This document shows positions 3,341 through 54,683 of a stretch of DNA of 64,000 bases, in pieces. A model generated the notes under the pieces. The model was given only the letters and a program-made list of their open reading frames with translations, ran no database searches and was not told the DNA's origin. The stretch is from Camelus ferus (taxonomy: Eukaryota): contig NC_045704.1 of NCBI RefSeq assembly GCF_009834535.1, forward strand, positions 29,760,001-29,824,000, read 5' to 3'. The first letter of the stretch is position 1. Each line of letters starts with the position of its first letter. The translations under genes were made by a program, and so were the position numbers.

Positions 3341-3505
3341 GGGGACGGGCATATCATTATTATTTGATACATGATTGTGATTGAAAGTCTTTATGGTCTG
3401 TCTCCAAACTCCCAGAGGCTGCTTTGGGCATCTCCCAGAGCTTCTGGAAGGTAGAATTTTCTCTTGCAGGTTGAGAAGGGGTTCTTTTGACAATAGAGTC
3501 AAAGA

Positions 3506-3709
3506 NNNNNNNNNNNNNNNNNNNNNNNNNNNNNNNNNNNNNNNNNNNNNNNNNNNNNNNNNNNNNNNNNNNNNNNNNNNNNNNNNNNNNNNNNNNNNNN
3601 NNNNNNNNNNNNNNNNNNNNNNNNNNNNNNNNNNNNNNNNNNNNNNNNNNNNNNNNNNNNNNNNNNNNNNNNNNNNNNNNNNNNNNNNNNNNNNNNNNNN
3701 NNNNNNNNN
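3506..3709. other. Assembly gap (204 N)
   Basis: Run of N in the sequence. Confidence 0.99.
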
Positions 3710-4644
3710 TTGCTATGTAAGGGAAATGAAACAGACTCCTAGCTTCGTGTGCAACACATTTCAGCTTCTGAAGGGTCTGGCTTGGGTGGTGGCGAGCTTT
3801 GTGGGTGGGGAGGTGGTTCATGAATTTAGACGGGTTTAATGTCTTCCTGGCTTCAGCACAAGATTTCCGGGGCATCAGCACATTAGCCAATTTCCAATGC
3901 AAACAGATTTGATCCATCACTGGTGTTGAAGAAAAGCTCTACCCCTCAGATCTGTCAGGTTCTCAAACATGAGCCAAATGAGTTAATATCTTCTCATTGT
4001 TGTCTTTATTAAGCCTTTATTAAGCCAATCTTGAATAATGATGTGTCCCTGTCAGAGGTCTTTTAATAAAGTAAGGGTTGCTTTATATAACTTCTCCAGG
4101 GAGAACACTGTGTCTTTAAAAATGCAGGGAGCCACAATGTCCAGAATGTAAGCGGCAAGGCTAATCCCCACAGCACTGGGCCTGAGATTTTAGCAGCAGA
4201 CCAGGGAGCAGCTCAGAATTTGTGGCACAGGCTTCGGAGGCAATATGCACAGGAAGCTAGATTTGGATGTCCTGTGGGCAGTAGAGGGAGGGGTTGGATG
4301 CTCTGGTGGCTGGGACAATGTAGGCTTAGTGCCTGTCTTACCACCATGGGAGATCCAGTTCGTGACTTAGTGCCAATGCCGTGGCACAGGGACAAATGGA
4401 GAAAAACCACATGGACTGGCCCAGTTCTCTTTGCCTCCACCTGTCTACATATAGGGATGCGAGTCTCTGGGAAACCCACATTTGGTTTATTATCAGTTCA
4501 CAGCTTGCTCACCAGGCCCAACCTGCCAGGACAGCGCTCAGTTTCTAAAATTGTCCCTCCTTCCTCCTTTTGTCAAGCTCCCCCTGCTGTCACCTAACCA
4601 TTTTGCTGTAAAGAGCTGATAAACAAAATCATACTAATGACTTA

Positions 4645-9554: not shown

Positions 9555-10015
9555 TGTCAGGGTTCTCCAGAGAAGTGAAACCAACAAGATGCACACACCC
9601 ACAGATTTATTATAAGGAATTTGCCCATACAATTATGGGAGCTGGAAGGTTCCCTGATCTGCTCTCTGTGGGCTGGAGGCCCAGGAATGCTGGTGGTACA
9701 GGTTCAGTGCAAGCTGGGGGGCCTGAGAACCAGGGGTGCTGATAGTGAAAGTCTCAGTCCAAGTGCGGAAAGAGACCAAAGCCCAAGCAGCCAGGTAGAG
9801 GGTGGAGTCTTCCTCCCTGGGCCTTTTATTCTGTCCAGGCCCTCAGGAGATGGGATGAGGTACACTGAGGAGGGCCATCTGCTTTACTCAGTCTACCAAT
9901 TCAAATGCTAATCTCCTTTGGAAACCCTGTCACAGACACATCTAGAATAATGTCTAGACAAATATCTGGGTATCTCGGGTCCTGGTCAAGTTGATACATA
10001 AAATTAACTATCATA
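9555..10015 (-). mobile_element. MLT2 (ERVL) solo LTR
   Basis: Starts cagggttctccagagaa and ends ggtcaagttgatacataaaattaactatcata, the reverse of the MLT2 start. Confidence 0.85.
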
Positions 10016-10029
10016 AAGGGGTAAAATTA

Positions 10030-11918
10030 GAGGATTTCCGGTCAAGATGGCAGAATGATAGGGCCAAGAGCTTGCCTCTCCCTGCGACTGCAATGAAACC
10101 ACAACTGAATGCTAAACAACCATCGAAAAAAGACTGGAACCTAGCAAAAAAGACCTTCTGCAACTGGAAACAAAGAGGGAATCAGAGCAAGAAGGTAGGA
10201 GGGGCGTGCTCACGATATAATTGGGCCCCAAACCCCTTGGCTATGTGACCCATAAGTTGAAGATTTGTTAAGTTGCAGAGGCCCTCCCACAGGAGTGAGA
10301 GCTCTAAGCCCCACATCAGGCTCCCCAGCCCAGGTCCTGGCATTGGGAAGAGAAGGAGACCCCAGGATATCTGGTTTTGAAAGCCAGGAGGGCTTGGCTC
10401 TGGAACCCTCATGGGACTTGGGGAAATGGAGACTCCATTCACTTGAGAAGCATACACAGAAACTCACGTGCATAGGTCCAAGGACAGAGCCAGTGATTTC
10501 ATAGGAACCTGGGCCAGGCCTGCCTGCTTGATTTGGAGGGTCTCCTGAGGACAAGAGGGAAAGCTGGGACTCACTCAGGGGACATAAATGCTGGTGGCGG
10601 ACATTCTGGGAGTGTTAATCTACATGAGCTTCCTTGGAGGCTGACACCTTGATTGGATCATTAGAACCAAGATCTAGCCCCACCCAACAGCCTTTAGAGA
10701 AGCCTCAGGCCAAACAACATACTGGGTGGAAACACAGCCCCACCCATCAGCAGACTTCCTAAGTCACAAAGGCCTCTAGACACAGCCCTACCCACCAGAG
10801 GTCCAGGACCAAGCTTCACTTAGCAGAGGGCAGGCACTGGCTTCTCCTGCCAAAAACCTGCATAAGCCTCTAGTCCAGCCTCATCCAGCAGGGGCAGTTA
10901 CTAGAAATAAGAAAACAATAATCCCAAAGCCTTTGGAAAGAATCCACAAACACATAGAAAGATAGAGGATATCAGATAGCAAAGGAATATCTCCCAGGCC
11001 AAGGCACAAGATAAAACTCAGAAGAAGAAATAGGTGTTGAGGAGATAGGTAATTTATCTGAGAAAGAGTTTAAAGTAATGATGGCCAAGATGTTCAGAGA
11101 ACTCAAGAGGAGTATAGATGCACAGAGTGAAGTTTTTAGCAAAGAGTTGGAAAATATAAAGAATACCCAGAGTTGAAGAATTAAAATGAGTGAAATGAAC
11201 AATACACTAGAAGGAACCAAGAATAGACTAAAGGAGGCAGAAGAATGGATCAGTGAGCTAAGACATATTAGTGGAAATCACTACTTCTGAACAGAAAAAA
11301 GAAAAAAAGACTAAAAAGGAATGAGAATAGTTTAAGAGAACTCTGGGACAACATGAAGTGCTCTAATATTCGCATTATAGGGGTCCCAGAAAGAGAAGAG
11401 AGAGAGCAAAGACCTGAGAAAATTTTTGGAGAGATAATAACCAAAAACTTCCCCAACTTGGGAAAGGAAACAGTCACCCAAGTCCTGGAAGTTCAGAGAG
11501 TACCGCACTGGATCAACCCAAAGAGGAACACACCAAAGTATATAGTCACCAAACTGACAACAATTAAGGATAAGGAGGAAATATTAAAATTAGCAAGAGA
11601 AAAGCAACAAATAACATACAAGGGAGCTCACATAAGGTTATCAGCTGATTTTTCAGCAGAAACTCTACAGGTCAGAAGGGAGTGGCACAATATATTTAAA
11701 ATGATGCAAGGGGGAAACTTACAAACAAGAATACTCTATACAGCAAGGCTCTCCTTCAGACCTGATGGAGAAATCAAAAGCTTCACAGACAAACAAAAGC
11801 TAAAAGATTTTAGCACCAACAAACCAGCTTTATAACAAATGTTAAAGGACCTTCCCTAGTCATTAAACCATAAAAGAGAACAAAAAGAAGAAAGAGAAAA
11901 ACAAAAGGGACCTACAAA
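10030..11918 (+). mobile_element. L1 5' UTR + ORF1 (5'-intact element that breaks just after ORF1)
   Basis: Starts gaggatttccggtcaagatggc, typical of an L1 5' end. The downstream part translates to ORF1p. Confidence 0.9.
10965..11859 (+). pseudogene. Disrupted L1 ORF1p
   Basis: Track ORF 11353-11835 gives NIRIIGVPEREE..QITYKGAHIRLSADFSAETLQVRREW..RLSF..GEIKSFTDKQKLKDF, the ORF1p RRM/CTD. There is a premature TAA at 11833-11835 and stops or frameshifts upstream. Confidence 0.9.
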
Positions 11919-12197
11919 GGATTGCTTTGGCTTTTTGAGTCTTTTGTGATTCCTTATAAATTGTGGAATTGTTTGTTCTAGTTCTGTGAGGAATGTTGCA
12001 AGTATTTTGATGTGGGTTGTGTTGGATCTGTGGATTGCTTTGGGTAGTGTGGCCATTTTGATAGTGTTGATTCTTCCAATCCAAGAGCACAAGAAATCTT
12101 TCCATTTCTTTGTGTCATTTCAGTTTTCAGAGTATAGGTAACCTCCTTGGTTAAGCTTATTTCTTGGAATTTTGTTGTTTTTAATGTAATGGAAATA
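11919..12197 (-). mobile_element. Inverted L1 ORF2 internal fragment
   Basis: The minus strand gives [21 protein letters not shown], matching the ORF2p motif [21 protein letters not shown]. Confidence 0.85.
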
Positions 12198-12249
12198 TCT
12201 CTGCCAGTTATAAAATTCTGGGTTTTGAAGTGAAGAAAAAGTGAATGAA

Positions 12250-12450
12250 GGGCTGCAAATGGCAAAATATCCTTCTTTTTAATGGGTGAGTTGTATTTCA
12301 TTACATGTATATATATACACACATATGCTGCATCTCCATTATCTATTCAACTATTGATGTGCACTTAGGATGCTTCCGTATCTTGGCAATTATAAATAAT
12401 GTTGCTGTTAATAGCAGGGTATATGTATCTTTCTGAGTTAATTCTTATTT
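12250..12450 (-). mobile_element. L1 ORF2-end/3' UTR fragment
   Basis: gctgcaaatggcaaaatatccttctttttaatgg...cttggcaattataaataatgttgct. Confidence 0.7.
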
Positions 12451-12569
12451 TGTGGTTGGCTTTATTCCTTTGATAACTATGTAAGTTTAAAAAGCTAAAT
12501 CTGTAAACATTCTTTAAAACAATGAACAGTACATATATGTAAATTAAAAGATAAATGTGCAGTAAAAAA

Positions 12570-12900
12570 AAAAAATCAAGCCATGAAAGCCATAGAAGAA
12601 ACTTAAAAGATATATTACTAAATGAAAGAAGGCAGTCCAAAAGGGCTACAAACTGTATGATTCCAACCAAATGACCTTCTGGAAAAGGCACAGCTACAGA
12701 AACAATAAAAAGATCATAGTTTCCAGGGGTTTGAGGAGAGGGAGGGAGGAATGAATAGATGAAGCACAAGGGATTTTTAGGGGAATGAAATTATTCTGTA
12801 TGACACTATAGTGGCTACATGTCATTATGCACTTGTCAAAACCCACAGAATGTACAACATCAAGAGTAAACCCTAATGTAAACTATGAAAAAAAAAAGAA
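12570..12900 (+). mobile_element. Old L1 (L1MB/L1MC-like) 3' end
   Basis: ctgtatgattccaaccaaatgaccttctggaaaaggc...aaaacccacagaatgtacaacatcaagagtaaaccctaatgtaaactatg followed by an A-tract. Confidence 0.75.
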
Positions 12901-13199
12901 CTAATTCCTGAGTCAAACTAACGCTAAAGGGTTTGGAAGAAAAGTGGAAACCATCAGCGGAGTCACAGAAGGAAAGGCCAGTCAGTTCATAAAAAAACAG
13001 AAACCAACAACAAAAACAATTATAAAAATGGTAGAATGCATTGAACTGGCATCTATATCATGGAAGCATTTCAAAGAGAAAGAGAGACTGACTGTGTCAA
13101 ATGAAGCTGATAAAGAAAAGTGTGGACTGAGAAATCTTTTTTTCCTATGATAGAATTGTTCTAAAATGGGATTGTGAGGGAGACACAACTCTGCACATT

Positions 13200-13860
13200 C
13201 ACACACACAAACAAAAGAATTTTGTATTTAAATGAGTGAATTTATGGCATGTAAATTATACCTCAAGAAACCTCTTCCAAAATGAAGGAGTGTTTAGCAC
13301 AGATCTACCCAAAAGAGCTGCTCCCAGGTATGCGTCTCACAGGGTAAATGAAAACAGATATTTAGAAAAAAGATGCATGTATATATATAATCAAAAATAT
13401 TTATTCATAGTAACCCACACTTAAACTAACCCAAATGTCCATTATTAAGAGAATGGATTAATATTTTGTGATATAATCTTACAAGATCAAATTATTCAGC
13501 CCTACAAACAGAATGAATGGCGTATTCAAATAAAAACATGTAGCTCTAAAAACATTCCTTAGAGCAAAAGAGACAGACATCAAAGTATTCATTGTGATTT
13601 TTTTCATTTTCATCAAGTTCAGCCACCATCAGACTGATGGATGCATGCCGTGAGAGTATGTGTATTTCTACTGAAATGTGACGGAGGGTATATATTCTAT
13701 GTTAATGGATGTGATTCAAACATGTGGCTTGTACACTGACTTTTCCGATACTGTTGAGGGTTAGGAATTTGAAAGATTTGTGAAATCATAAACTTTACAT
13801 TGACACATTTCACTATGTTTTTATTGTATACAGATACAAACACACAACAAAAGAGGTAAG
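13200..13860 (+). mobile_element. Old L1ME-like fragments
   Basis: Degenerate L1 3'-end motifs, including aactaacccaaatgtccatt and gcatgtaaattatacctcaa. Confidence 0.45.
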
Positions 13861-13961
13861 AAAGAATTATCATTAGACAATAATAGAGAAAATGACATTT
13901 TAGTTCCAACCCTCTCCTCTGACAACACCCTCCTCCCCACCGACACTGACCAGATAACTGA

Positions 13962-14044
13962 CCAATCCAGGACGTCAGTTGGGTTCCAGGTGGAATGTTG
14001 GGGTGTCCCCTGGGGCTTGCTGTGGCTGGTGGCTCCATGGTAAC
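13962..14044 (+). promoter_or_regulatory. Candidate promoter motifs upstream of the retrogene (CCAAT, CRE-like, RFX X-box-like)
   Basis: CCAAT 13962-13966, GACGTCA 13971-13977 and GGCTCCATGGTAAC 14031-14044. Motif matches only. Confidence 0.35.
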
Positions 14045-14072
14045 TGGGCAGAGCCCTGGGTGGGTCAGTGCC

Positions 14073-14699
14073 ATGGAGGGGCTGCCATCCTCTGTGGAGC
14101 TTGGCTTTGGGCTGATCCTTAGGAAGCTGAGTGCGATCCTGGTTTTGCTGCTGTTCAGTGGCCTGTGTTCTCAGTTCATGTTCTGGAGCCTCCACAGGGA
14201 GACAGCATTGAGTCTACCTGTCCTCACCTTATTGCTGGGTGTCTCATTCAGTTTCAGACTTATTTGGTCTGTTAGAAGTCAACTTAACAGAAGACATGAA
14301 AAGCAACTGGCAAAAACACTCGCAGCACAGATTAAGGAGAAATGCCACCTCATCGACCAGCTTTGTGTGGCTAAAAATGATCATGCCAAGATGGAGATAA
14401 CTGTAAAGAATGCCAAGCTACAGGAGCCAGTAAATATACCCAGCCTCGCTGACACTTACACAAAGTTGATGACAATCAACCTGAGCTCAAGGAAGGAAAT
14501 CAGTTTTCTCATCCAAGAACTGAGAAAAGAGAGATCCTTACAGTCTATACAGGAAGAGATGGTGGAGACGCTAAAAGTGCTCAAGTTCCTGGAAGAGATC
14601 ATGAGACTCAGCACATCACAAGGCACTTTTACACACCAGCCAGGGGACCGAGCACCAAGTCCTGATGGTCCCTTTCCCAGGAGTGGGCCCTCGTCTTAA
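14073..14699 (+). CDS. Intronless, diverged cTAGE family (cTAGE5/MIA2-like) retrogene, 208 aa: membrane anchor + coiled coil + stub of proline-rich domain
   Basis: Lies within track ORF 13995-14699. The ATG at 14073 has a strong Kozak context (gccATGG). MEGLPSSVELGFGLILRKL resembles the recalled cTAGE5 start MEEPGATPQPYLGLLLEEL. SVRSQLNRRHEKQLAKTLAAQIKEKCHLI resembles SVRSRLYVGREKKLALMLSGLIEEKSKLL. SLADTYTKL..EISFLIQELRKERS resembles SLEATCEKL..EILCLEKELKEEKS. No introns. Expression is not shown, so it could be a pseudogene. Confidence 0.8.
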   Translation: MEGLPSSVELGFGLILRKLSAILVLLLFSGLCSQFMFWSLHRETALSLPVLTLLLGVSFSFRLIWSVRSQLNRRHEKQLAKTLAAQIKEKCHLIDQLCVAKNDHAKMEITVKNAKLQEPVNIPSLADTYTKLMTINLSSRKEISFLIQELRKERSLQSIQEEMVETLKVLKFLEEIMRLSTSQGTFTHQPGDRAPSPDGPFPRSGPSS

Positions 14700-15371
14700 A
14701 GCTGTGCTGTTCCCTCCCCTCCACTCAGGCCTCCCAAGCTGCCAGGCTGCATTCACTCACTCAGTCAGATCCCCACCTGAGCTGCACTGAGGCCAGTGGA
14801 GGGAGGGCAAGCCCCTCCTTTGGACCAGAGTTCCTCCAACTTTACCAGTGAGCACAGCAGTGAACTCCTTCATGGTCAACATCTCTCATCCAAAATATAC
14901 TGGAATTCCCAGAACACACCACGAAGCGTGGGACTTTTTTTATGTCCAGCAAATGTTTGGATTATCTCTCATTAGTTGTGAAAGAAATGTTGTAATTGAA
15001 ACTGATCTTCTACTTAGTTTGAATTATATTAAGCCTCATATCTCAAGACAGTTTGGGTAACTATTATATATCAGCAATGCAAGTGAAGTGTATATATAGT
15101 TATTCTATATATATTATATTTGTATTATAGTATAAATATTGCATTATAATTTTAAAATGTATGCAATTTGTCAATATAAACTTTTAGATGGCCATAGCAT
15201 TTATTTCTAGAGTTTAATTCTGAAGTCATAAGTTTAAGTCAAAGAGCCTTTTTTACCTGAGTATGTATAGCTTAAAAAAAATAGATGAACTTTTTAAAGA
15301 TGAAGCTAAATTGTACTCTTAGAAGAAACTTTTATCATTTAATTTTTATATTCTGTTATAACAATACCCAG

Positions 15372-15383
15372 AATAAAAATAAA
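15372..15383 (+). terminator. Tandem polyadenylation signals closing the retrogene's AT-rich 3' UTR
   Basis: AATAAA at 15372-15377 and 15378-15383, followed by a short A-run near 15397-15402. Confidence 0.5.
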
Positions 15384-17629
15384 TTTGATAAATTTTAAAA
15401 AATTACATTGAGGATAGATGTGGTGTGGAACATACACACGTGCTCAGAAAAGCTGCTCTGAGCCAGTCTGATGGTACTTTGGTGACGCTGGGTAATACTT
15501 GGTAATTGTCAGCTGTTGGATAAAGCTATTGGGTGACCCTTGGTCCTTGCTTTCTATGCCATTCACATTGAGCTCTGGGATGCTCTTCATTCTCCTCTGC
15601 ATCTCCTTAACAACTCCTGACGACCTAGTCCTGGGACTCCCTTTTCCTCAGGCTCCCTTGGGCCGCTAGGGCTGAGGATGCCTTTGCGGAGCTGGTATGA
15701 GCTCCATCATATCTTGGCTGGGGTCAGGGCAGTGCAGTTGGTTTTCGCTGAGGCCAAGCTTGTGGGTTACAGTGTCTGCCCCTACCTTGCAGAAAGTGAG
15801 GCTAGAACACAGCAGTAAATACACAGGACATCACCCTTTTAAATATCAGGACTGGATCTTGGGCTCCCCGACATTTGGTACTCAAAAACAGCTCTGGCAA
15901 ACAGTCAAACATTCACACAGAAGACCAGAAAAGACAACATCTACAAAGAATTGGGAGACAACTCACAGCTGTCCTGGAGAATCTCTTTGGAGGTGGTCTT
16001 GTTGGGCCCTGTGCTTCCAGGCAGACTGACCCTAGCCCAACCTCAGAATGGTGGAAACCCCAGGCCTCGGACCCCTGCCTCCTCCCTGGATTCCCCCACA
16101 GGTCATGGGAAGGCTAACCCACCATTCCAACAGCAAAGCCCCATGGTTTGCTCTGGGGCTGGGAACCTTGGGGCCGGGGCCTCAGAAGCCCCTCACCTGC
16201 TTCTCCCCTCCCTGGCAAATGTCTCTTTATCAGTCGCCAACGATCAGTTTCTCAGAGATCTTCTGGCTTTTATTTTCTCCCCATGAACATTATCTATTTG
16301 TCCAATTCATTCCGAAAATAGCCCGGCCCAGCCATCTCATAATGCCCCTAGCCTGTGTCACTCAAAACAGGGGCCCGGCAGGAGGTCCGAGCTCTTCTTC
16401 CTGTCCTTTCTCTTCTTTAATAAGCAGACCCCGGGCTTCAGTCAATGCGTTTCCTCCAGATTCATGAGTTGGCTGCTTCTGCAGCGGCCCCAGATCCTGC
16501 AGATAAATCTCCCCCGGAGCTGTGAACACAGATAGAGGGGAACAGCTCCACCGGATCCTCAGAGAGGGGACCATGGAGACACCAGATTTATTACCCACCC
16601 TGTCCCTTAGGGTGTCTCCTCCTTGACCTTCAGGAAGAAGAAGGGCCAGTGTACGGTTTTTGCTGCCAGGGACTGAGATGCCAAAGGCGCTGCCTCCAAA
16701 GGTGCCCTCCCTGCTTGTCGTTGGTGACAAGTGGAGAGCCCGGTTGTGGAAGATGGTAGGTGAGGGGCCTTAGCCCCTAAAGGAAGGGATGACCATGCTG
16801 CTGGCCTTGCTGGGGACTCACCACTGCTGGAGGGAAATGCACTGATTTCTAGTCCTGCTCTCCAGGGTCACTCTGGGTTAATTTTAGCTGCTTCTCTGCC
16901 CCTGGATGGGCCACACATTTTTCCTCCTTAGCTGCGTCCAAGGCTCTCTTCTCACACAGCCCCAGCACCCACCCAAGCAAAATTGAGACATGTGCTTATG
17001 ACAGTGTGTTTCCATGAAGACAGATCGCTCTCTCTCCAAGGTCAAAGCTCCCGCTGGCCAGGCTCTTTGGCAAACGATTCGTCAAACAGGGCAGCGGGCA
17101 GCAGAGAGTCAGCTCTCAGGCCCCTGGCTGGTTGACACGTCAAAACCTTTCAGAGGATTATTGTGCCCTGTAGAACTTTTCTCCTTCCACTGTCTGTCTG
17201 GGCCTCCCCTGCCGGCACCCCCGACATGGAGGGATGAGTTGGCGCAGTATCAGAAATTATGACAGGGACCCAGAAGGCAAAACAAATCCTTCTGCAGAAA
17301 TTGGGAAATTTCTCAGTCATTTTCCAAGGCAAGAGCCGTGGCCCCTTGTGAGATTTAAAAAACAGGACAGCGAAGACATTGTGCTTGTTCGCTTACTTGT
17401 CAGGCTCCCACATCTGCGAGCGGGACTGTCTTGTTCGCCACCGGCCCTTAGCACAGGGCTGGCTTTTGTTAACTTGTGTATGTACTCATGTGTTTACTAT
17501 TTATTAAATGTCTACTATTAGCCTGGCCCTGGGCACAGGGTTCCTGTCCTCAGGGAGCTTACTGCCTTGTAGAAGCTCTCACTCCATAACGAGGGGAAGG
17601 ACATATAAAGGTATTAATGGATTCAGAGA

Positions 17630-18320: not shown

Positions 18321-18564
18321 TTAGAGGTTATAGAAGAAGCCCTGTGGAAGTGAGGTGGCTAGGAAAGGCCCACCTGAGGACATCGCCTTGAAGGATGTGT
18401 AGGACCAGATGTACAAAAGGCTGGAAGAATAGCATTGCAAGCAAAGGGAACAGCATGTGCAAAGGCACTTAGGCAGGAAAGGGCTTGGATTATTTTGAGT
18501 CATGGCTAAAAAGTCAGGCCTGGATGGTAGGCTTGTCTCTTTATTTCTTTAAAAAAAAGGTATT

Positions 18565-19025
18565 TTTTTTTTATTGAAATATAGTTGATTCGCAATGTTG
18601 TGTTAGTTTCTGGTGCACAGCATAGTGATTCAGTTATACATACTCTTTTTCATATTCTTTTTTATTATAGGTATTACCAGATATTAAATATAGTTCCCTG
18701 TGTTACATTGTAGGGCCTTGTTGTCTATCTATCTTATATATAGTAGTGTGTATCTGTTAAAACCAAACTCCTAATTTAGCCCTCCCCTCCTTTCCTCTTT
18801 GGTAACCATAGTTTGTCTTCTATGTCTGTGAGTCTGTTTCTGTTTTGTAAGTAAGTTCATTTGTATCATTTTAAATATTCTGCATATAAGTGATATCATA
18901 TATTTGTCTTTCTCTGTCAGACTTACTTCACTTAGTATGATGATAGACTTAGCTCCATCCACGTTGCTGCATATGGCATTATTTCATTCTTTTTTATGGC
19001 TGAGTAGTATTCCATTGTATATATA
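18565..19025 (-). mobile_element. Lineage-specific L1 3' end
   Basis: T-tract followed by attgaaatatagttgattcgcaatg...gctgcatatggcattatttcattctttttatggctgagtagtattccattg. Confidence 0.85.
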
Positions 19026-19074
19026 TGGCTTGTCCCTCTATTTCCACTGTCTTTATTTCCCAACTCAGCCTTGA

Positions 19075-40658: not shown

Positions 40659-42094
40659 CCCATCTATCTCTCTATTTAGCTTTATCGTATATTTGTCCCA
40701 TATATATATATATAGCTGTATCCTATAGTCTTTCTATAAATGAGAAAGCTGAGGCCTGGCAAATACTCACCCAGACCTCAGCGAAGTCAGATGCAGAGCT
40801 GGGACCACACTTTGATCTATGAAGTCCCAGCCTGGGCTCAGTCCCTGGGTTCCTGAAATTTATTTGTTCTTTTAAACCTCATATCTATGGAAAAGGGATT
40901 CAAAGTAACCTAAAGGAAAGGATGTGACAACAAGTTGCCAAAATACAAACAGTGGGAAAAAAATCAAGACCAAAGTTTAATGCAAATACACCAGCTTTAG
41001 TAGGTAATTTGGGCTTGAGCTTCCTGGCATCCACAGTAAAAAAGGAAAGCCCTCAGAGTTTTCTCCAAGGAGACAGAAGGTTGTTATGTTTATAACTGAG
41101 TTATAATCTATTCAAGATTCTTGGATAGGAACTATTGACTAGGAGACAGTGCTTCCTGCTAGTTTCCTGTGAAGGCAGAAGTGTGTTTCCATGGCTGCCC
41201 ATGATACCAACCCTTTCTGAAAGACAGGGCATCTGGTTAAAACACAAGTCAGAAAAGTGACCCAGAAAGTGGCTGAGCTAAGGTGGTCCAGGTCTGAAGA
41301 CCTCTGAGGGCTCAAACATAAACACAAAAAACTCTGATGCAGGGTATACCTTATAGAACAGTTACAACTGATGGTCTGGAGGCCTGGAGCCCTGCCTGCT
41401 CCCCTGCCACCACAGCCCCGAGGCAGTCCACGCAGCTACAAAGACTCTGGAGTGAATTCTCAACCCTGGAACTGCCCGAGGACAGACACAGGCTTTTGGA
41501 AGCCTGCTGGCACTTCCCCCACCTTGAAGGCACCCTGAGCTCTATCTAGGGTGGGTGCCTACTAGCATCGCTTCATCCTACCCTGTGCTCCAGAGGCCGG
41601 GTCCCAGCTGGGCACAAGCCGGCATTCCCTGGTCCCCTTGCCTGCAGCCAGGGGATGGCTGACTGCTCAGCCGGGAGCCATCTGATCCTTCCTTGTTAAT
41701 TTCTCATTAGGATTTTTGTTGGCTTTTCTTTTAAACAATTTCTTGGGTTTCATTCAAGGTCAAGGAGGAGGATGCCACTGAAGGAGGGGGGAGAGCCCCA
41801 CCCTAATCAAATCTGAGAGGAGACAGGATAAAAATTAACCTTCATTTGAATATGTAAACAAACACTGCGCTTGGTAACTTCCAGCCGTCCTTGGCTTGGG
41901 TCACCGAGGAGCGGAACAGTGATTCATCTGCCAGGTCTCTTCATGGCAGGAAAAACTTTATTCTTAAAGGCTTTTTACACTTGAATAAGTGCTAAATAAT
42001 AATAATAGGCCAAGTAACTCTTTCCCCTGGAAGAGTGTCAACACAGGCGGGATGGAGGAACTGAGAGTTCTTCTAGGGAGTGAGGGGGTGACAA

Positions 42095-42362
42095 NNNNNN
42101 NNNNNNNNNNNNNNNNNNNNNNNNNNNNNNNNNNNNNNNNNNNNNNNNNNNNNNNNNNNNNNNNNNNNNNNNNNNNNNNNNNNNNNNNNNNNNNNNNNNN
42201 NNNNNNNNNNNNNNNNNNNNNNNNNNNNNNNNNNNNNNNNNNNNNNNNNNNNNNNNNNNNNNNNNNNNNNNNNNNNNNNNNNNNNNNNNNNNNNNNNNNN
42301 NNNNNNNNNNNNNNNNNNNNNNNNNNNNNNNNNNNNNNNNNNNNNNNNNNNNNNNNNNNNNN
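42095..42362. other. Assembly gap (268 N)
   Basis: Run of N in the sequence. Confidence 0.99.
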
Positions 42363-49030: not shown

Positions 49031-51127
49031 TTTTGGGACAGGAACTGCCGGCACCCCTCATAGAGGGCTGCTTTTGAGATCACCTGCCATACTATTACCA
49101 TTGCATTTCCTTGTCTTTTCCTTCTACAAGGGCTGTTGAAGGTCACATCACAAACCGGATGTCTGTCATAACAGAGAATTCTTCCCTGATAAAAGAGGTA
49201 GTTGGGGGAACAAGTGCTTGGCTTGGTGATTTTAGAAGTCTTGATTTGTCAAAGCCAAGAATAGCCTTGTAATAATAAAGGGAAAAAATTGCTTGCGATT
49301 CCAAAGGGAGTCATGATTTAGCGATAGTCCCGAAGGAAAATTAGGGTCCGTGTGTGACGGCTCCTCTCCTTCCTGCTGCCTCCTGAGAGACGATTACTCA
49401 TTCGTAATTTATTAGCTAATTATGCACGGGCAAAGGAGTATGAATCACTTCATTTAGATGATAGCAATTAGCGAGGACTTGTTGGAGTTCTTTCTGCTGT
49501 GGTTCTGAGTGTGTTTAGACAACACAGGTGCTGCCTGGGCCAGGATACCTCTGGGGAGGAGGTCCTCCATTTCCCCTGCACCTGCCAAGCTAGCAAGTCG
49601 TTCCATCCTAACTCCTCCCTGATCTCCTCTGACGGGACTGCTTTCTGATCTGTCTTCCCTTCACCTCTTACAGGTTCTGCAACCTTGGGCAAGTCGTCTC
49701 ACCTCTCTGGACCCCATCTGTAAAATGGAATCATCTACTCTCCCTGCTAGCATGCAGGAGGCTGGATGGATTTGGAATCCCTGGGTGTTTGGTTTGCTCC
49801 TAACACACCAGAAAGTGGAGGAAACACCGGTCCTGAGAACCCACTGCTCCACGCCCACTGCAGGGATGCACTGTCCATGTGCTTATGGATCCAGGCTCCA
49901 GGGTGCGCCTACCACCATAGCATTTATTAGCAAAGGGCAGCCAACAATCTCAGGGTCCAAGAACAGGAGAACAGCTAAATGAAATGTGATGTATTCAAAT
50001 GATGGAATCCTACCAATCAGTTACCAGGACTGACCTAAATCTCTGTATGTCAACATGGATAGTGGCAAATTGCCAAATCATTATACAGTAGGATCTCATT
50101 CATGCCGAGAAATTGATATAAAATAATGTTACACATTTTCTGAGGAGAAGGATCTCAATCAGTCAATCAATCAATCAATCCTCTATCTATATTTGTATTC
50201 TGATGAAGGATACTGCAGGTCCAGAACAACGCATCAAATTAGGAGCTTAAAAGCATCAGAATATCATGGATAAAAATCCCTTTGGTAACTGCTCTCCAAT
50301 CCCAAATCCTTGATCACTTCCACGGAGGGTAGGAGCTGGATTTGGGAGGGTGACAAAGAAGAGTTTAATTGTATCAGAATATTCTAACTTAAAAAATGTG
50401 AACTAGGCAATTATGAACACCTGATGCCCCAACTCACTCCAAGGGTTCTGCCCTGGGGCCCCCGAAGTTCCTCCCAGCCCACTGCCACTCTTGCCTCAGT
50501 CCTCCACCCCCCAGCTCCTCTCTTTACACTAAGACAGATTTTAATAAAGTTGCCGCATGTGGAATAGGATTACCAGTTCATCTGATTTTCACTATTTGAA
50601 GTCCTAGGGGAAGAAAAGCCTTGTTTAACTCAATTCATAACACTATTAATCCAACCATAAACCTTCTGACGACTTGAAAAGAAAGAAGAGAATTCATTAC
50701 AGCCCATTGCTAAGCGTCAAATCCTTCCTCTCACACACCAGCAGGTGAGACTCTTGGAGGCCGCTGGCCCTGGGTCTCTCCGAAGGTCATTCTCAGAGCA
50801 GACTCCCGGCACAGAGCTGACTGAATGGAGATTGTGTGGGAGCTCTCACTCCTTCCCTCTCCTTCCACACTCCCCATGTGGGGCAACTGGGGCCCAGAGA
50901 GGTTGTGTATGTTGGCCAAGGTCACAAAGCTAAAAAGCAACAGATTGGACTAACTCAGCTCTCCTGATTTTATACCGAGGGATTCATTCATTGTAAAGAT
51001 AGTTATAAATGTGCTTTTATAAGTTTACACACAACCATTCTACTTCTGGGTATCCAGTACAGGGAAGTAATTCTAAATATGGAAAAAGCTGTATCCTTAG
51101 TATGTTCATCACAGTATAATTCATAAT

Positions 51128-51880
51128 TTTTTTTATTGAATCAGAGTTGATTTACAATGTATTAATATCTGGTGTACAGCACAGTGATTCATTTATACAT
51201 ATTCCTTTTCATATTCTTTTTCATTATAAGCCATTACAAGGTATTGAATATAGCTCCCTGTGTTATACAGTAGGACCTCACTGTTTATCTATTTTATTTA
51301 TAGTAGTTTGTATCTATGAACCCCAGTTTATTCCTCTACCTTCTGTTTCCCCACTGGTAACCATAAGTTTGTTTTCCATGTCTGTAAGACTGTCTCTTTT
51401 TTGCAAATAAGTTCATTTTGGTCCTTTTTTTTTTTTTTTAAAGATTCCACATGTAGGTGGCATCATACGGTATTTTTCTTCCTCTTTCTGGCTTACTTNN
51501 NNNNNNNNNNNNNNNNNNNNNNNNNNNNNNNNNNNNNNNNNNNNNNNNNNNNNNNNNNNNNNNNNNNNNNNNNNNNNNNNNNNNNNNNNNNNNNNNNNNN
51601 NNNNNNNNNNNNNNNNNNNNNNNNNNNNNNNNNNNNNNNNNNNNNNNNNNNNNNNNNNNNNNNNNNNNNNNNNNNNNNNNNNTAGAGTGCAGGTGTCTTT
51701 TTGAATTAGAGTTTGCCCCAGATAAATGCCCAGGCGTAGGATTGATAGATCATGGGGTAAGTCTATTTCTAATTTTTAAAGGAATCTCCATACTGTTTTC
51801 CATAATGGCTGCCCCAAATTACATTCCCACCATCAGTGTAGAAGGATTCCCTTTTCTCCACATCCTTTCCAGCCTTCACA
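51128..51880 (-). mobile_element. Lineage-specific L1 3' end (spans a gap) inside an old L1ME
   Basis: tttttattgaatcagagttgatttacaatgt...gaaggattcccttttctccacatcctttccagc. Confidence 0.8.
51499..51682. other. Assembly gap (184 N)
   Basis: Run of N in the sequence. Confidence 0.99.
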
Positions 51881-52750: not shown

Positions 52751-54215
52751 ACACCCGTGCCTGGCAGCAAAGCAAATTGACTCAGACTCATTTCATAGAT
52801 GAGGAAATTGAGGTATAGAGCGCCTTTATGATTTTTCCAGGTCACAAAGCCAGAAAATGCATGTATTTAATAATCATGATTGCAAAGCCAGGACAAGAAG
52901 CCAGGTATCCTGACTTCCAGACTGTCCACTGCCCCACCCTGCCTGAGGCATAACCTTGAGAATTCTGCCCCAAAGCATCAGGATGTAAGACTAAGAAAGA
53001 CCTGAGGATCTTGGGCTATGCCCCAGGGAAGTCTGAGGCAAAGAGCAGGGCTTCCTTCAAGGGGGATGGAGGTGTCTGCCCACCCCTGGCAGGCCAGCTG
53101 GAAGGAACCAGGGAATAAAGCTCATTATATCACAGGACCCAAGAAACACAAGGTCTGGTCCTCCCAGGCCTGGGCACTGACAGCCGGCTGCCTGCCATCC
53201 CTGCAGAAGCTTCTCAAGAAACTGAAGCAGAGCAGGGAAGGTCAGTGAGCAACTTGATCCTTGATTTACCAGCAAATATTTCATGCAGCACTGGGGACAT
53301 GGCAGAGAATGTGGCAGATGATGAGGGCCCTGCCCATGCAGGCGCTAGAGTTTTGTAGGGCATCCAAGAGAGGCAGTGATTGTACAGTTTCAGAGTCCAA
53401 GCTTGGGGGCCAGACAGCCTAGGTTTGAAGCTTGTCTCTCCCACTCATGAGGTGTGAGAACTGGGGTGCACCTCCCTAAACCTGCCTCATTTTCCTTACC
53501 TATGAAAATGGGATGTTGGTAGCAGCATGTACCTTCGAAATCCTTTCTAATCCACATTCATGCCCATCACATCATTCAGTTCTTAAAACATTGGGGCAAG
53601 GTGGGCACTAGGAAATGTAATCCCACTGGCGGTGCTCATGGTCATGAGGTCTATGATGAATCCATCCCAACCCCAGGGGCTACTGCCCAACACCACCAGT
53701 GCCCAGGTGTTCCACCAGCCAGTGCCTCTTTAATCCCCGAGCAGAGAAGCTCATGCATTGCCACATCACCATGGCTCAGTAGCTTGGATAAAGACCCCCT
53801 CACACTCACATGTGGCCTCTGGGTGCCCCTCACCACTGGGCTCCCCCTCACACGCCAGGGAGGAGTCAGCCTCAGTAGAGCTGGGGGTCCTCCCTGGGCC
53901 AGGCATAAACTCCTCTCCAGCTTGGGAAGATGTTCCATTTCCCAGACTCCAAGCAATATCACCTACACTCTCCAGAGACATTAACTGCTGCTCCTATGTG
54001 GTCAAATAATGATCACTCCTTAAACTTTTGGGAAAAAAAAGCTAAATATAAATGTAACACAGACAGATGATAAAAACAGACAGCTCAAGAAGGCAAATCA
54101 TGAAAACGACACACCTGTCTTCTCTTACCTTACCACACAACCTTCAGAATTTTGTTTCTCAGGGAAATTCACTTCTTGTGGTCTCTACCAGCCTATATAT
54201 GTACACATCCTTTTT

Positions 54216-54683
54216 TAAAATTTTTTTTTATTGGGTTATAGTCAGTTTACAATGTTGTGTCAACTTCTGGTGTATAGCACAATTCTTCAGTCAAACGTGA
54301 ATATACATATATTCATTTTCATATTCTTTTTTACTGTGAGCTACTACAGGATATTCAATACAGTTCCCTGTGCTATACAGTATAAACTTGTTTATCTATT
54401 TTATATATACCAGTCAGTATCTGCAAATCTCGAATTCCCAGTTTATCTCTTCCCACCCTCCTCCCCACTGGCAACCACAAGTCTGTATTCTATGTCTATG
54501 AGTCCGTTTCTATTTCATATATATGTTCATTTGTCTTTTGTTTTTTAGATTCCACATATGAGTGATATCATATAGCATTTTTCTTTCTCCTTCTGGCTTC
54601 ACTTAGAATGACATTCTCCAGGTACATCCATGTTGTTGAAAATGGCATTATGTTGTCTTTTTATGGCTGAGTAGTATTCCATC
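54216..54683 (-). mobile_element. Lineage-specific L1 3' end with TSD
   Basis: TSD ACACATCCTTTTT at 54203-54215 and 54684-54696. Confidence 0.85.

Follow-up and report, generated by a model that had tools for sequence, protein, structure and literature searches.

An intact, intronless cTAGE5/MIA2-like gene of Camelus ferus belongs to a multi-copy, rapidly evolving family of apparent retrogenes in placental mammals

The window, a stretch of 64,000 nucleotides from Camelus ferus contig NC_045704.1 (positions 29,760,001 to 29,824,000), contains one copy of a truncated cTAGE5-like gene, as determined by tblastn. Its coding sequence is the longest open reading frame (ORF) of the 64 kb when the ORFs running through N stretches are set aside; by a rough estimate, about 0.05 ORFs of this length are expected by chance in 64 kb over the six frames. 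The original prediction of an uninterrupted, intronless ORF of 208 codons with a strong Kozak start and a 3' UTR with poly(A) signals was borne out: the frame lies exactly at 14073..14699 on the forward strand, the start context gtgccATGGag (GCCATGG) has G at both -3 and +4, and AATAAA is found at 15372 and 15378. The frame is also open 5' of 14073, with in-frame ATGs at 13995 (which would give a protein of 234 aa) and 14037, but 14073 is the only one of the in-frame ATGs that is common to all relatives and to cTAGE5 itself. The features of the locus are the following:

11510..14743, no strand assigned: duplication unit with 82-88% DNA identity to camel paralogs (blastn and MAFFT), including an L1 ORF1 fragment
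12900..13600, no strand assigned: upstream block collinear with the wolf locus (alignment to Canis lupus baileyi L012)
13948..14072, forward strand: block of ~125 nt upstream of the ATG, a putative 5' leader or core promoter, which aligns across 10 loci
14073..14699, forward strand: CDS of 208 codons plus TAA for a truncated cTAGE5-like protein, with start and stop shared by the family
14073..14135, forward strand: residues 1-21, from the cTAGE5-type alternative first exon (GLxLxxL..V segment), aligning from Met1
14202..14270, forward strand: residues 44-66, predicted transmembrane segment (Kyte-Doolittle, with an AlphaFold helix running through it), aligned to cTAGE5 42-60
14256..14420, forward strand: residues 62-116, juxtamembrane coil, equivalent of the Sec12-binding segment at aa 61-115 of human cTAGE5
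14421..14627, forward strand: residues 117-185, distal coil 1 (alignments; predicted helix 123-182)
14628..14696, forward strand: residues 186-208, Pro/Gly/Ser-rich tail predicted to be disordered (pLDDT ~40), ending at the family-wide stop
14700..15395, forward strand: 3' UTR with AATAAA at 15372-15377 and 15378-15383, ~675 nt past the stop

The interval around the ORF is repeat-rich. An L1 ORF1 fragment lies at 11353-11835 on the forward strand (Pfam Transposase_22, E 3.7e-21; Tnp_22_dsRBD, E 2e-20), and interspersed-repeat copies were found at 10040-10493, 18555-19026 and 54210-54682, as well as several times in the dromedary locus L003. One such repeat directly follows each camel gene copy, at the point where the homology to the window 3' UTR ends. 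Runs of N occupy ~3500-3750, 42030-42360 and 51500-51680, with 656 N in total.

Searches with the ORF protein against Pfam and PDB sequences gave no match above noise. In addition to the predicted transmembrane segment, a second hydrophobic stretch was found at residues 10-28 by the Kyte-Doolittle method. AlphaFold2 with the family alignment (mean pLDDT 68) predicted helices at residues 6-25, 33-117 and 123-182 followed by the disordered tail, and the pLDDT peaked (~91) at residues 81-100, within the juxtamembrane coil. The distal part of coil 1 has a 9-residue deletion relative to mammalian cTAGE5, and the C-terminal ..GPFPRSGP.. is kept in the camel, ruminant-like, raccoon dog and bat copies. 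Coil 2 is absent, as the ORF ends at residue 208, and a tblastn search with MIA2 195-806 against the ORF end and the 3' region found nothing significant (best E 0.62). The proline-rich domain is also absent, the C-terminus consisting of a 23-residue Pro/Gly/Ser tail only. The gene is thus a truncated derivative with the membrane anchor and coil 1 only, and not a whole cTAGE5 copy.

The tail matches cTAGE5 516-531, the first proline-rich exon, at 9 of 16 residues, which is not significant. A weak colinear resemblance to cTAGE5 516-588 runs from 14649 to 14882 on the forward strand, in frame through the ORF stop, and is not significant either (E 2.1 with the window as target, 0.62 with a small database). 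In turtle MIA2 an exon begins exactly at EHSPYGPSP, the start of the proline-rich region, and the family stop aligns opposite a cTAGE5 Glu codon. If the tail and the sequence just beyond the stop came from the proline-rich exon, as these alignments suggest without reaching significance, the source transcript would have had an internal deletion or skipped exons.

The cTAGE5/MIA2-like identity of the protein, which had been proposed from scattered motifs, was confirmed by sequence and profile comparisons. The window protein matched the raccoon-dog MIA2 isoform X4, an 806-aa cTAGE5-type isoform, with 28% identity (BLASTP, E 2e-12), and the family profile aligned with cTAGE5-type MIA2 from Met1, family residues 1-190 against MIA2 1-194 (hhalign, 99.6%, E 7.6e-25). 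At these E-values chance similarity to cTAGE5 was rejected. A profile built from 14 members and searched against 1.8 billion representatives returned 265 matches, many of them fragments. The long matches align exactly at the transmembrane and first coiled-coil region, and every one of those whose name was looked up is MIA2/cTAGE5; hmmsearch E-values to named MIA2 proteins ranged from 1e-29 to 1e-25.

Two properties of the alignment bear on how the gene arose. The first ~21 residues of the family match a segment of the cTAGE5-type first exon (GLVLEELRRVV in mammals, GLALERARSVV in reptiles), while the long MIA2 isoform carries a different upstream exon at that place, with which the family N-terminus does not align, indicating that the source was the short, cTAGE5-type transcript. 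In turtle MIA2 (locus L006), the cTAGE5-type residues 1-211 are distributed on at least seven exons across ~11 kb. When its junctions are transferred on the assumption that MIA2 has the same exon structure in mammals, six of them map near ORF residues 21, 69, 102, 127, 163 and 186, and the ORF is contiguous over all six, which points to a processed retrocopy, as originally predicted. No further MIA2 exons were detected in the 64-kb window with the 806-aa MIA2 query (tblastn), and the copy lies at a site away from the parent gene. Downstream of the AATAAA pair (15372-15383) only an A/T-rich stretch was seen; with the age of the insertion, a poly(A) remnant and target-site duplications have probably become unrecognisable. 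As judged from these alignments, the reading of the ORF as an intact intronless gene copied long ago from a cTAGE5/MIA2 mRNA is supported.

A search of 5.8 billion proteins recovered 21 relatives of ~200-211 aa that begin alike (MEGL.SS.EL), most of the full-length ones also ending alike (..GPFP.SGP..); overall, the family proteins measure ~200-213 aa. The nearest relatives are camel proteins annotated as hypothetical or uncharacterized (65-68% identity). Named members were found in camelids (Camelus ferus, C. dromedarius and C. bactrianus), other artiodactyls (Muntiacus, Rangifer, Cervus and Bos mutus, the last as "cTAGE-6, partial"), canids (Nyctereutes, with two loci, and Canis lupus, as "cTAGE family member 9-like"), the bat Phyllostomus, the squirrels Ictidomys and Callospermophilus, and the tree shrew Tupaia ("cTAGE 8"). 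There were no primate or mouse members among the named database matches, and a metagenome scan yielded three loci only. In the protein tree the short family is monophyletic (support 100/99), and the window sequence groups with the camel copies (100/100) inside the artiodactyl clade (100/95). When the wolf row was left out, a branch of the best tree had the family and mammalian MIA2 on one side, with weak support (40/70). The ORF is thus not a lone oddity but a member of a multi-copy family present in several mammalian orders. Literature searches turned up no description of the family, and databases carry automatic names only.

The duplication unit was delimited by alignment of the window with the two paralogs of C. 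dromedarius L003 and with that of C. ferus L001. In L003 (CM070317.1:8965435-9026332) the copies lie at 10001-10627 and 50269-50898, 40 kb apart; they are 95% identical in the ORF, the first having two in-frame stops and the second being intact. Positions 11510-14743 of the window align to both L003 copies, so the camel paralogs arose by segmental duplication, and since the L1 fragment lies within the segment duplicated among them, it was inserted before those duplications. Broken copies were also found at other loci: the L004 copy has a frameshift, and L008 and L009, located beside the intact L007, have a stop and a frameshift.

Outside the camelids, window segments 12900-13600, 13980-14380 and 14706-15388 align in order with the Canis lupus baileyi locus L012 at ~68% identity, an arrangement compatible with a common genomic position. 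The loci of the bat and the squirrel and both raccoon-dog loci share with the window only a stretch that opens ~125 nt upstream of the ATG and takes in the ORF and the 3' UTR, a pattern that fits either secondary retroposition of a family transcript or decay of old flanks. The wolf copy itself (CM106971.1, 10001-10795) is intact and extremely diverged (~33% identity), and is compositionally deviant in the tree. Its N-terminus is Ala/Gly/Pro-rich, and ~1.3 kb are inserted between its ORF and the conserved 3' UTR; GC-biased evolution of this copy is a possibility.

The block just before the ATG aligns across 10 loci from camelids, other artiodactyl-like hosts, canids, bat and squirrel, covering five or more orders. 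The alignment across loci collapses upstream of it, and it is here that the homology between dispersed copies begins. The block contains a CCAAT-box-like motif, ACTGACCAAT, and a second element, GGTGGAATGTTGGGG, both of which may be promoter or leader elements. Conservation of GGTGGAATGTTGGGG and ACTGACCAAT across orders exceeds that of much of the coding sequence. A CRE-like ACGTCA is also found in the window leader, with ATGTCA, ATGGCA or other variants at the corresponding place in the other copies. On the other side of the ORF, the first ~300 nt of the 3' UTR align with raccoon dog, wolf and squirrel, and the wolf alignment extends to ~15388, just beyond the AATAAA pair; no other AATAAA or ATTAAA was found up to 16500. 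The conserved 5' and 3' blocks would correspond to the transcript leader (or core promoter) and to the transcript 3' end.

A fraction of 0.26-0.37 of the 31-mers sampled from 13990-14960 was present in RNA-seq runs from at least four studies, and several of the runs carry the label reproductive system. The runs measured 178-914 million letters, some of them 178-242 million, and in the smallest ones most of the matching 31-mers came from the 971-nt half of the 2-kb query that carries the ORF and UTR. If their content were genomic contamination, runs this small would amount to less than 0.5x, too little to assemble, and paralogs at 82% identity share few 31-mers. The copy, or a near-identical one, therefore appears to be expressed, the 31-mer shares being blind to strand, transcript ends and tissue. 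As for the reproductive protein that had been proposed, the run labels support it indirectly, at the level of RNA.

Selection on the family was analyzed with nine intact coding sequences, for which omega on the tree was 0.68 (2 delta lnL 22.4, p 2e-6 against neutrality). An altered taxon set, with the wolf dropped, the squirrel tail trimmed and the second raccoon-dog copy added, gave an omega of 0.69 (p 1.4e-5). The family-wide omega of 0.68 indicates weak constraint. Pairwise omegas under the codon model ranged from 0.46 to 0.92, most of them individually not different from 1. Across four protein regions omega was 0.61-0.74, and the juxtamembrane coil had the shortest tree length. The Sec12-like segment was considered as a specially constrained region and rejected, because its omega of 0.61 against 0.61-0.74 elsewhere does not single it out. 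Fast amino-acid change with a kept frame is typical of reproductive and cancer-testis-type genes.

We hold it to be reasonably probable that the window copy, intact and apparently transcribed, is a camelid paralog within a retrogene family that is old and evolves rapidly, and that could act as a modulator or decoy at ER exit sites. Set against this, the whole family could consist of neutrally decaying retro-pseudogenes whose intact ORFs are seen because protein databases list ORFs. The high pairwise omegas, the many fragment matches and the broken copies L003a, L008 and L009 among the loci recovered without ORF ascertainment speak for such decay. Nevertheless, intact ORFs with the same start and stop are found in camel, raccoon dog (two loci), bat and further hosts, and the divergence between orders is 1.5-2.9 substitutions per codon. 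The frame, start and stop have been kept despite this divergence, so neutral decay cannot explain the family: neutral survival of a 200-codon frame across the camel, canid, bat and other lineages is vanishingly unlikely, neutrality was rejected on the tree with both taxon sets, and the 5' leader is conserved across orders. A family of pseudogenes is on these grounds very improbable. Slightly less credible still is the view that the gene arose from the 5' part of MIA2 by partial duplication at the DNA level, or that it is an ancient paralog within the MIA family, and not a retrocopy of cTAGE5 mRNA. This would account for a first tree in which the family attached outside the amniote MIA2 group, and for the poly(A) tail and target-site duplication not being recognisable; but the six parental intron positions are traversed uninterrupted, the gene has its start codon and first-exon segment in common with the cTAGE5-type transcript, the best tree unites the family with mammalian MIA2 once the compositionally deviant wolf row is removed, and all named members are placental mammals.

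It is possible, if rather unlikely, that the window copy in particular is transcribed but functionless, having stayed intact through short time, with any function residing in other copies. On the branch of the window copy itself, distance-based estimates of omega were 0.5-0.66, with bootstrap intervals that include 1, and ~20% of neutral simulations with 53 substitutions stayed stop-free, so that the absence of stops has a probability of about 0.2 under neutrality. Sibling copies are broken, L003a by two stops and L004 by a frameshift. The ORF, moreover, has changed no more slowly than the sequence around it: in the comparison with the intact camel paralog it has a dN of 0.18 and a dS of 0.28, with a flank distance of 0.147, and it is 82% identical to the camel paralogs where the flanks are 85-88% identical. 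The ORF being less conserved than the flanks, nothing shows strong constraint on the protein sequence. Opposed to this reading is the pattern of indels, with one 3-nt indel in the ORF against the camel paralog and 23 gap events, mostly frame-breaking, in 2 kb of flank; at flank indel rates, the absence of both stops and frameshifts would have a p of ~0.02. These rates, however, probably overstate the expectation, because the ORF of the broken camel copy is likewise free of indels relative to its neighbour, with ~4 expected. The point estimate of omega on the own branch equals that of the family, no other camelid copy has a branch as short as that of the window copy, and the RNA runs contain 31-mers of this copy, few of which would be expected in paralogs at 82% identity. 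The case is sound for the family and weaker for the copy. The original proposal that the ORF is under selection, or was copied from a functional diverged paralog, is essentially right: the ORF is one paralog of an old family evolving under weak constraint (omega 0.68, p 2e-6), and the copy itself, whose own-branch interval includes 1, may be constrained.

The history that we favor begins with a spliced cTAGE5-type MIA2 transcript that was reverse-transcribed into the genome, presumably before Laurasiatheria and Euarchontoglires diverged. What was retained is the parental start, the membrane anchor and coil 1 to residue ~190, followed by a short Pro-rich tail and the family-wide stop. The family later spread to other loci, in camels by segmental duplication, with copies being born and dying, some intact and some with stops or frameshifts.

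The window gene agrees in its start codon and first-exon segment with cTAGE5, the short isoform of MIA2 (MIA SH3 domain ER export factor 2). The transmembrane anchor and coil 1 are homologous up to residue ~194, and the protein keeps the Sec12-contact residues E75, K76 and K89. The gene differs in being intronless, in the length of its product (208 aa against ~804 aa, at 28% identity), and in the absence of both coil 2, which in human cTAGE5 spans aa 301-650 and mediates TANGO1 binding, and the C-terminal proline-rich domain, which binds Sec23/24. The positions of L93 and S97 are not conserved in the family, and the family omega is ~0.68.

Several primate CTAGE genes are intronless, near full length (~750-780 aa) and close to cTAGE5 in sequence, and the family is counted among the cancer/testis genes. 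The window family resembles the primate CTAGE family (CTAGE1, 2, 4, 6, 8, 9, 15; CT21) in that both are multi-copy and derived from cTAGE5, and annotation pipelines name its members "cTAGE family member 9-like", "cTAGE-6" or "cTAGE 8". In contrast to the primate genes, it forms a separate monophyletic clade of ~208-aa proteins with its own shared stop, and it is found in artiodactyls, carnivores, bat, squirrels and tree shrew, with no named primate member recovered. The CT21 CTAGE family has 21 human members, and an omega of 0.53 has been reported for CTAGE1 (PMC1890293). We infer that the window family is older than the primate CTAGE radiation. If its product is real, it would add a second, independent, non-primate radiation of cTAGE5-derived genes beside the primate family. 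TANGO1 and TANGO1-short (MIA3) share the plan of a membrane anchor and a cytoplasmic coiled coil, and protein-atlas feature matches point to TANGO1-like clusters; however, the named long profile matches are all MIA2, and TANGO1, whose coils do not bind Sec12 (PMC4164946), additionally carries coil 2 and a proline-rich domain.

In human cTAGE5, Sec12 is bound by aa 61-115, directly after the membrane span, with E75, K76, K89, L93 and S97 as critical residues (PMC4927275). The substitutions E75A/K76A, K89A(/L93A) and S97A lower Sec12 binding while TANGO1 binding persists (PMC4927275, PMC4164946), and S97A alone impairs Sec12 binding (PMC4927275). Two separable jobs are assigned to cTAGE5, the recruitment of Sec12 and the engagement of the COPII coat via TANGO1 and the proline-rich domain (PMC4927275). 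The window protein has E76, K77, K90, I94 and C98 at the five critical positions, so that three of the five are kept. The first three positions are conserved in most of 58 family members, with E in 91%, K or R in 81% and K in 90% of them. The position of L93 is I here (I/T/S in the family), and that of S97 is C here and variable in the family, in contrast to MIA2 proteins, in which both L93 and S97 are nearly invariant.

The product would be an ER-membrane-anchored cytoplasmic coiled coil that retains most of the cTAGE5 segment binding Sec12, the Sar1 exchange factor, and that is devoid of coil 2 (TANGO1) and of the proline-rich domain (Sec23/24). By analogy with cTAGE5, such an anchored coil may still bind Sec12 or pair with the coils of cTAGE5 or TANGO1. 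Lacking coil 2 and the proline-rich domain, it would be unable to contact TANGO1 by way of coil 2 or to engage the inner COPII coat, and would then act as a tissue-specific modulator or decoy of ER-exit-site organisation. A more speculative extension, which we regard as improbable but worth stating, is that a conserved "mini-cTAGE5", an ER-anchored protein made up of just the Sec12-binding juxtamembrane coil, exists in many non-primate placentals, is expressed in reproductive tissue and serves as a decoy or tuner of Sec12 recruitment to ER exit sites, its repeated duplication and rapid change being driven by reproductive conflict or selection. If the product is real, the family would constitute a natural experiment in which the Sec12 module alone has been kept and maintained across several mammalian orders, and it would provide a ready-made, evolution-tested fragment, predicted to bind Sec12, for trial as a modulator of ER exit sites.

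The family loci also have consequences for camel annotation, where the current gene models are chimeric or missing. RefSeq LOC116156032 spans both L003 copies, and its chimeric product of 278 aa has the look of an artefact of annotation. In C. ferus KB018518.1 (L001, 10001-11035), the 5' part of the gene is partially repeated in tandem at the beginning of the hypothetical protein CB1_002658001 (291 aa), and the contig ends in a third partial copy, reflecting either local duplication or an assembly artefact. The C. ferus protein XP_032318232.1 (298 aa, "LOW QUALITY 8-amino-7-oxononanoate synthase-like") holds the family segment corresponding to profile positions 79-194, and is a further camel copy swallowed by a chimeric gene model.
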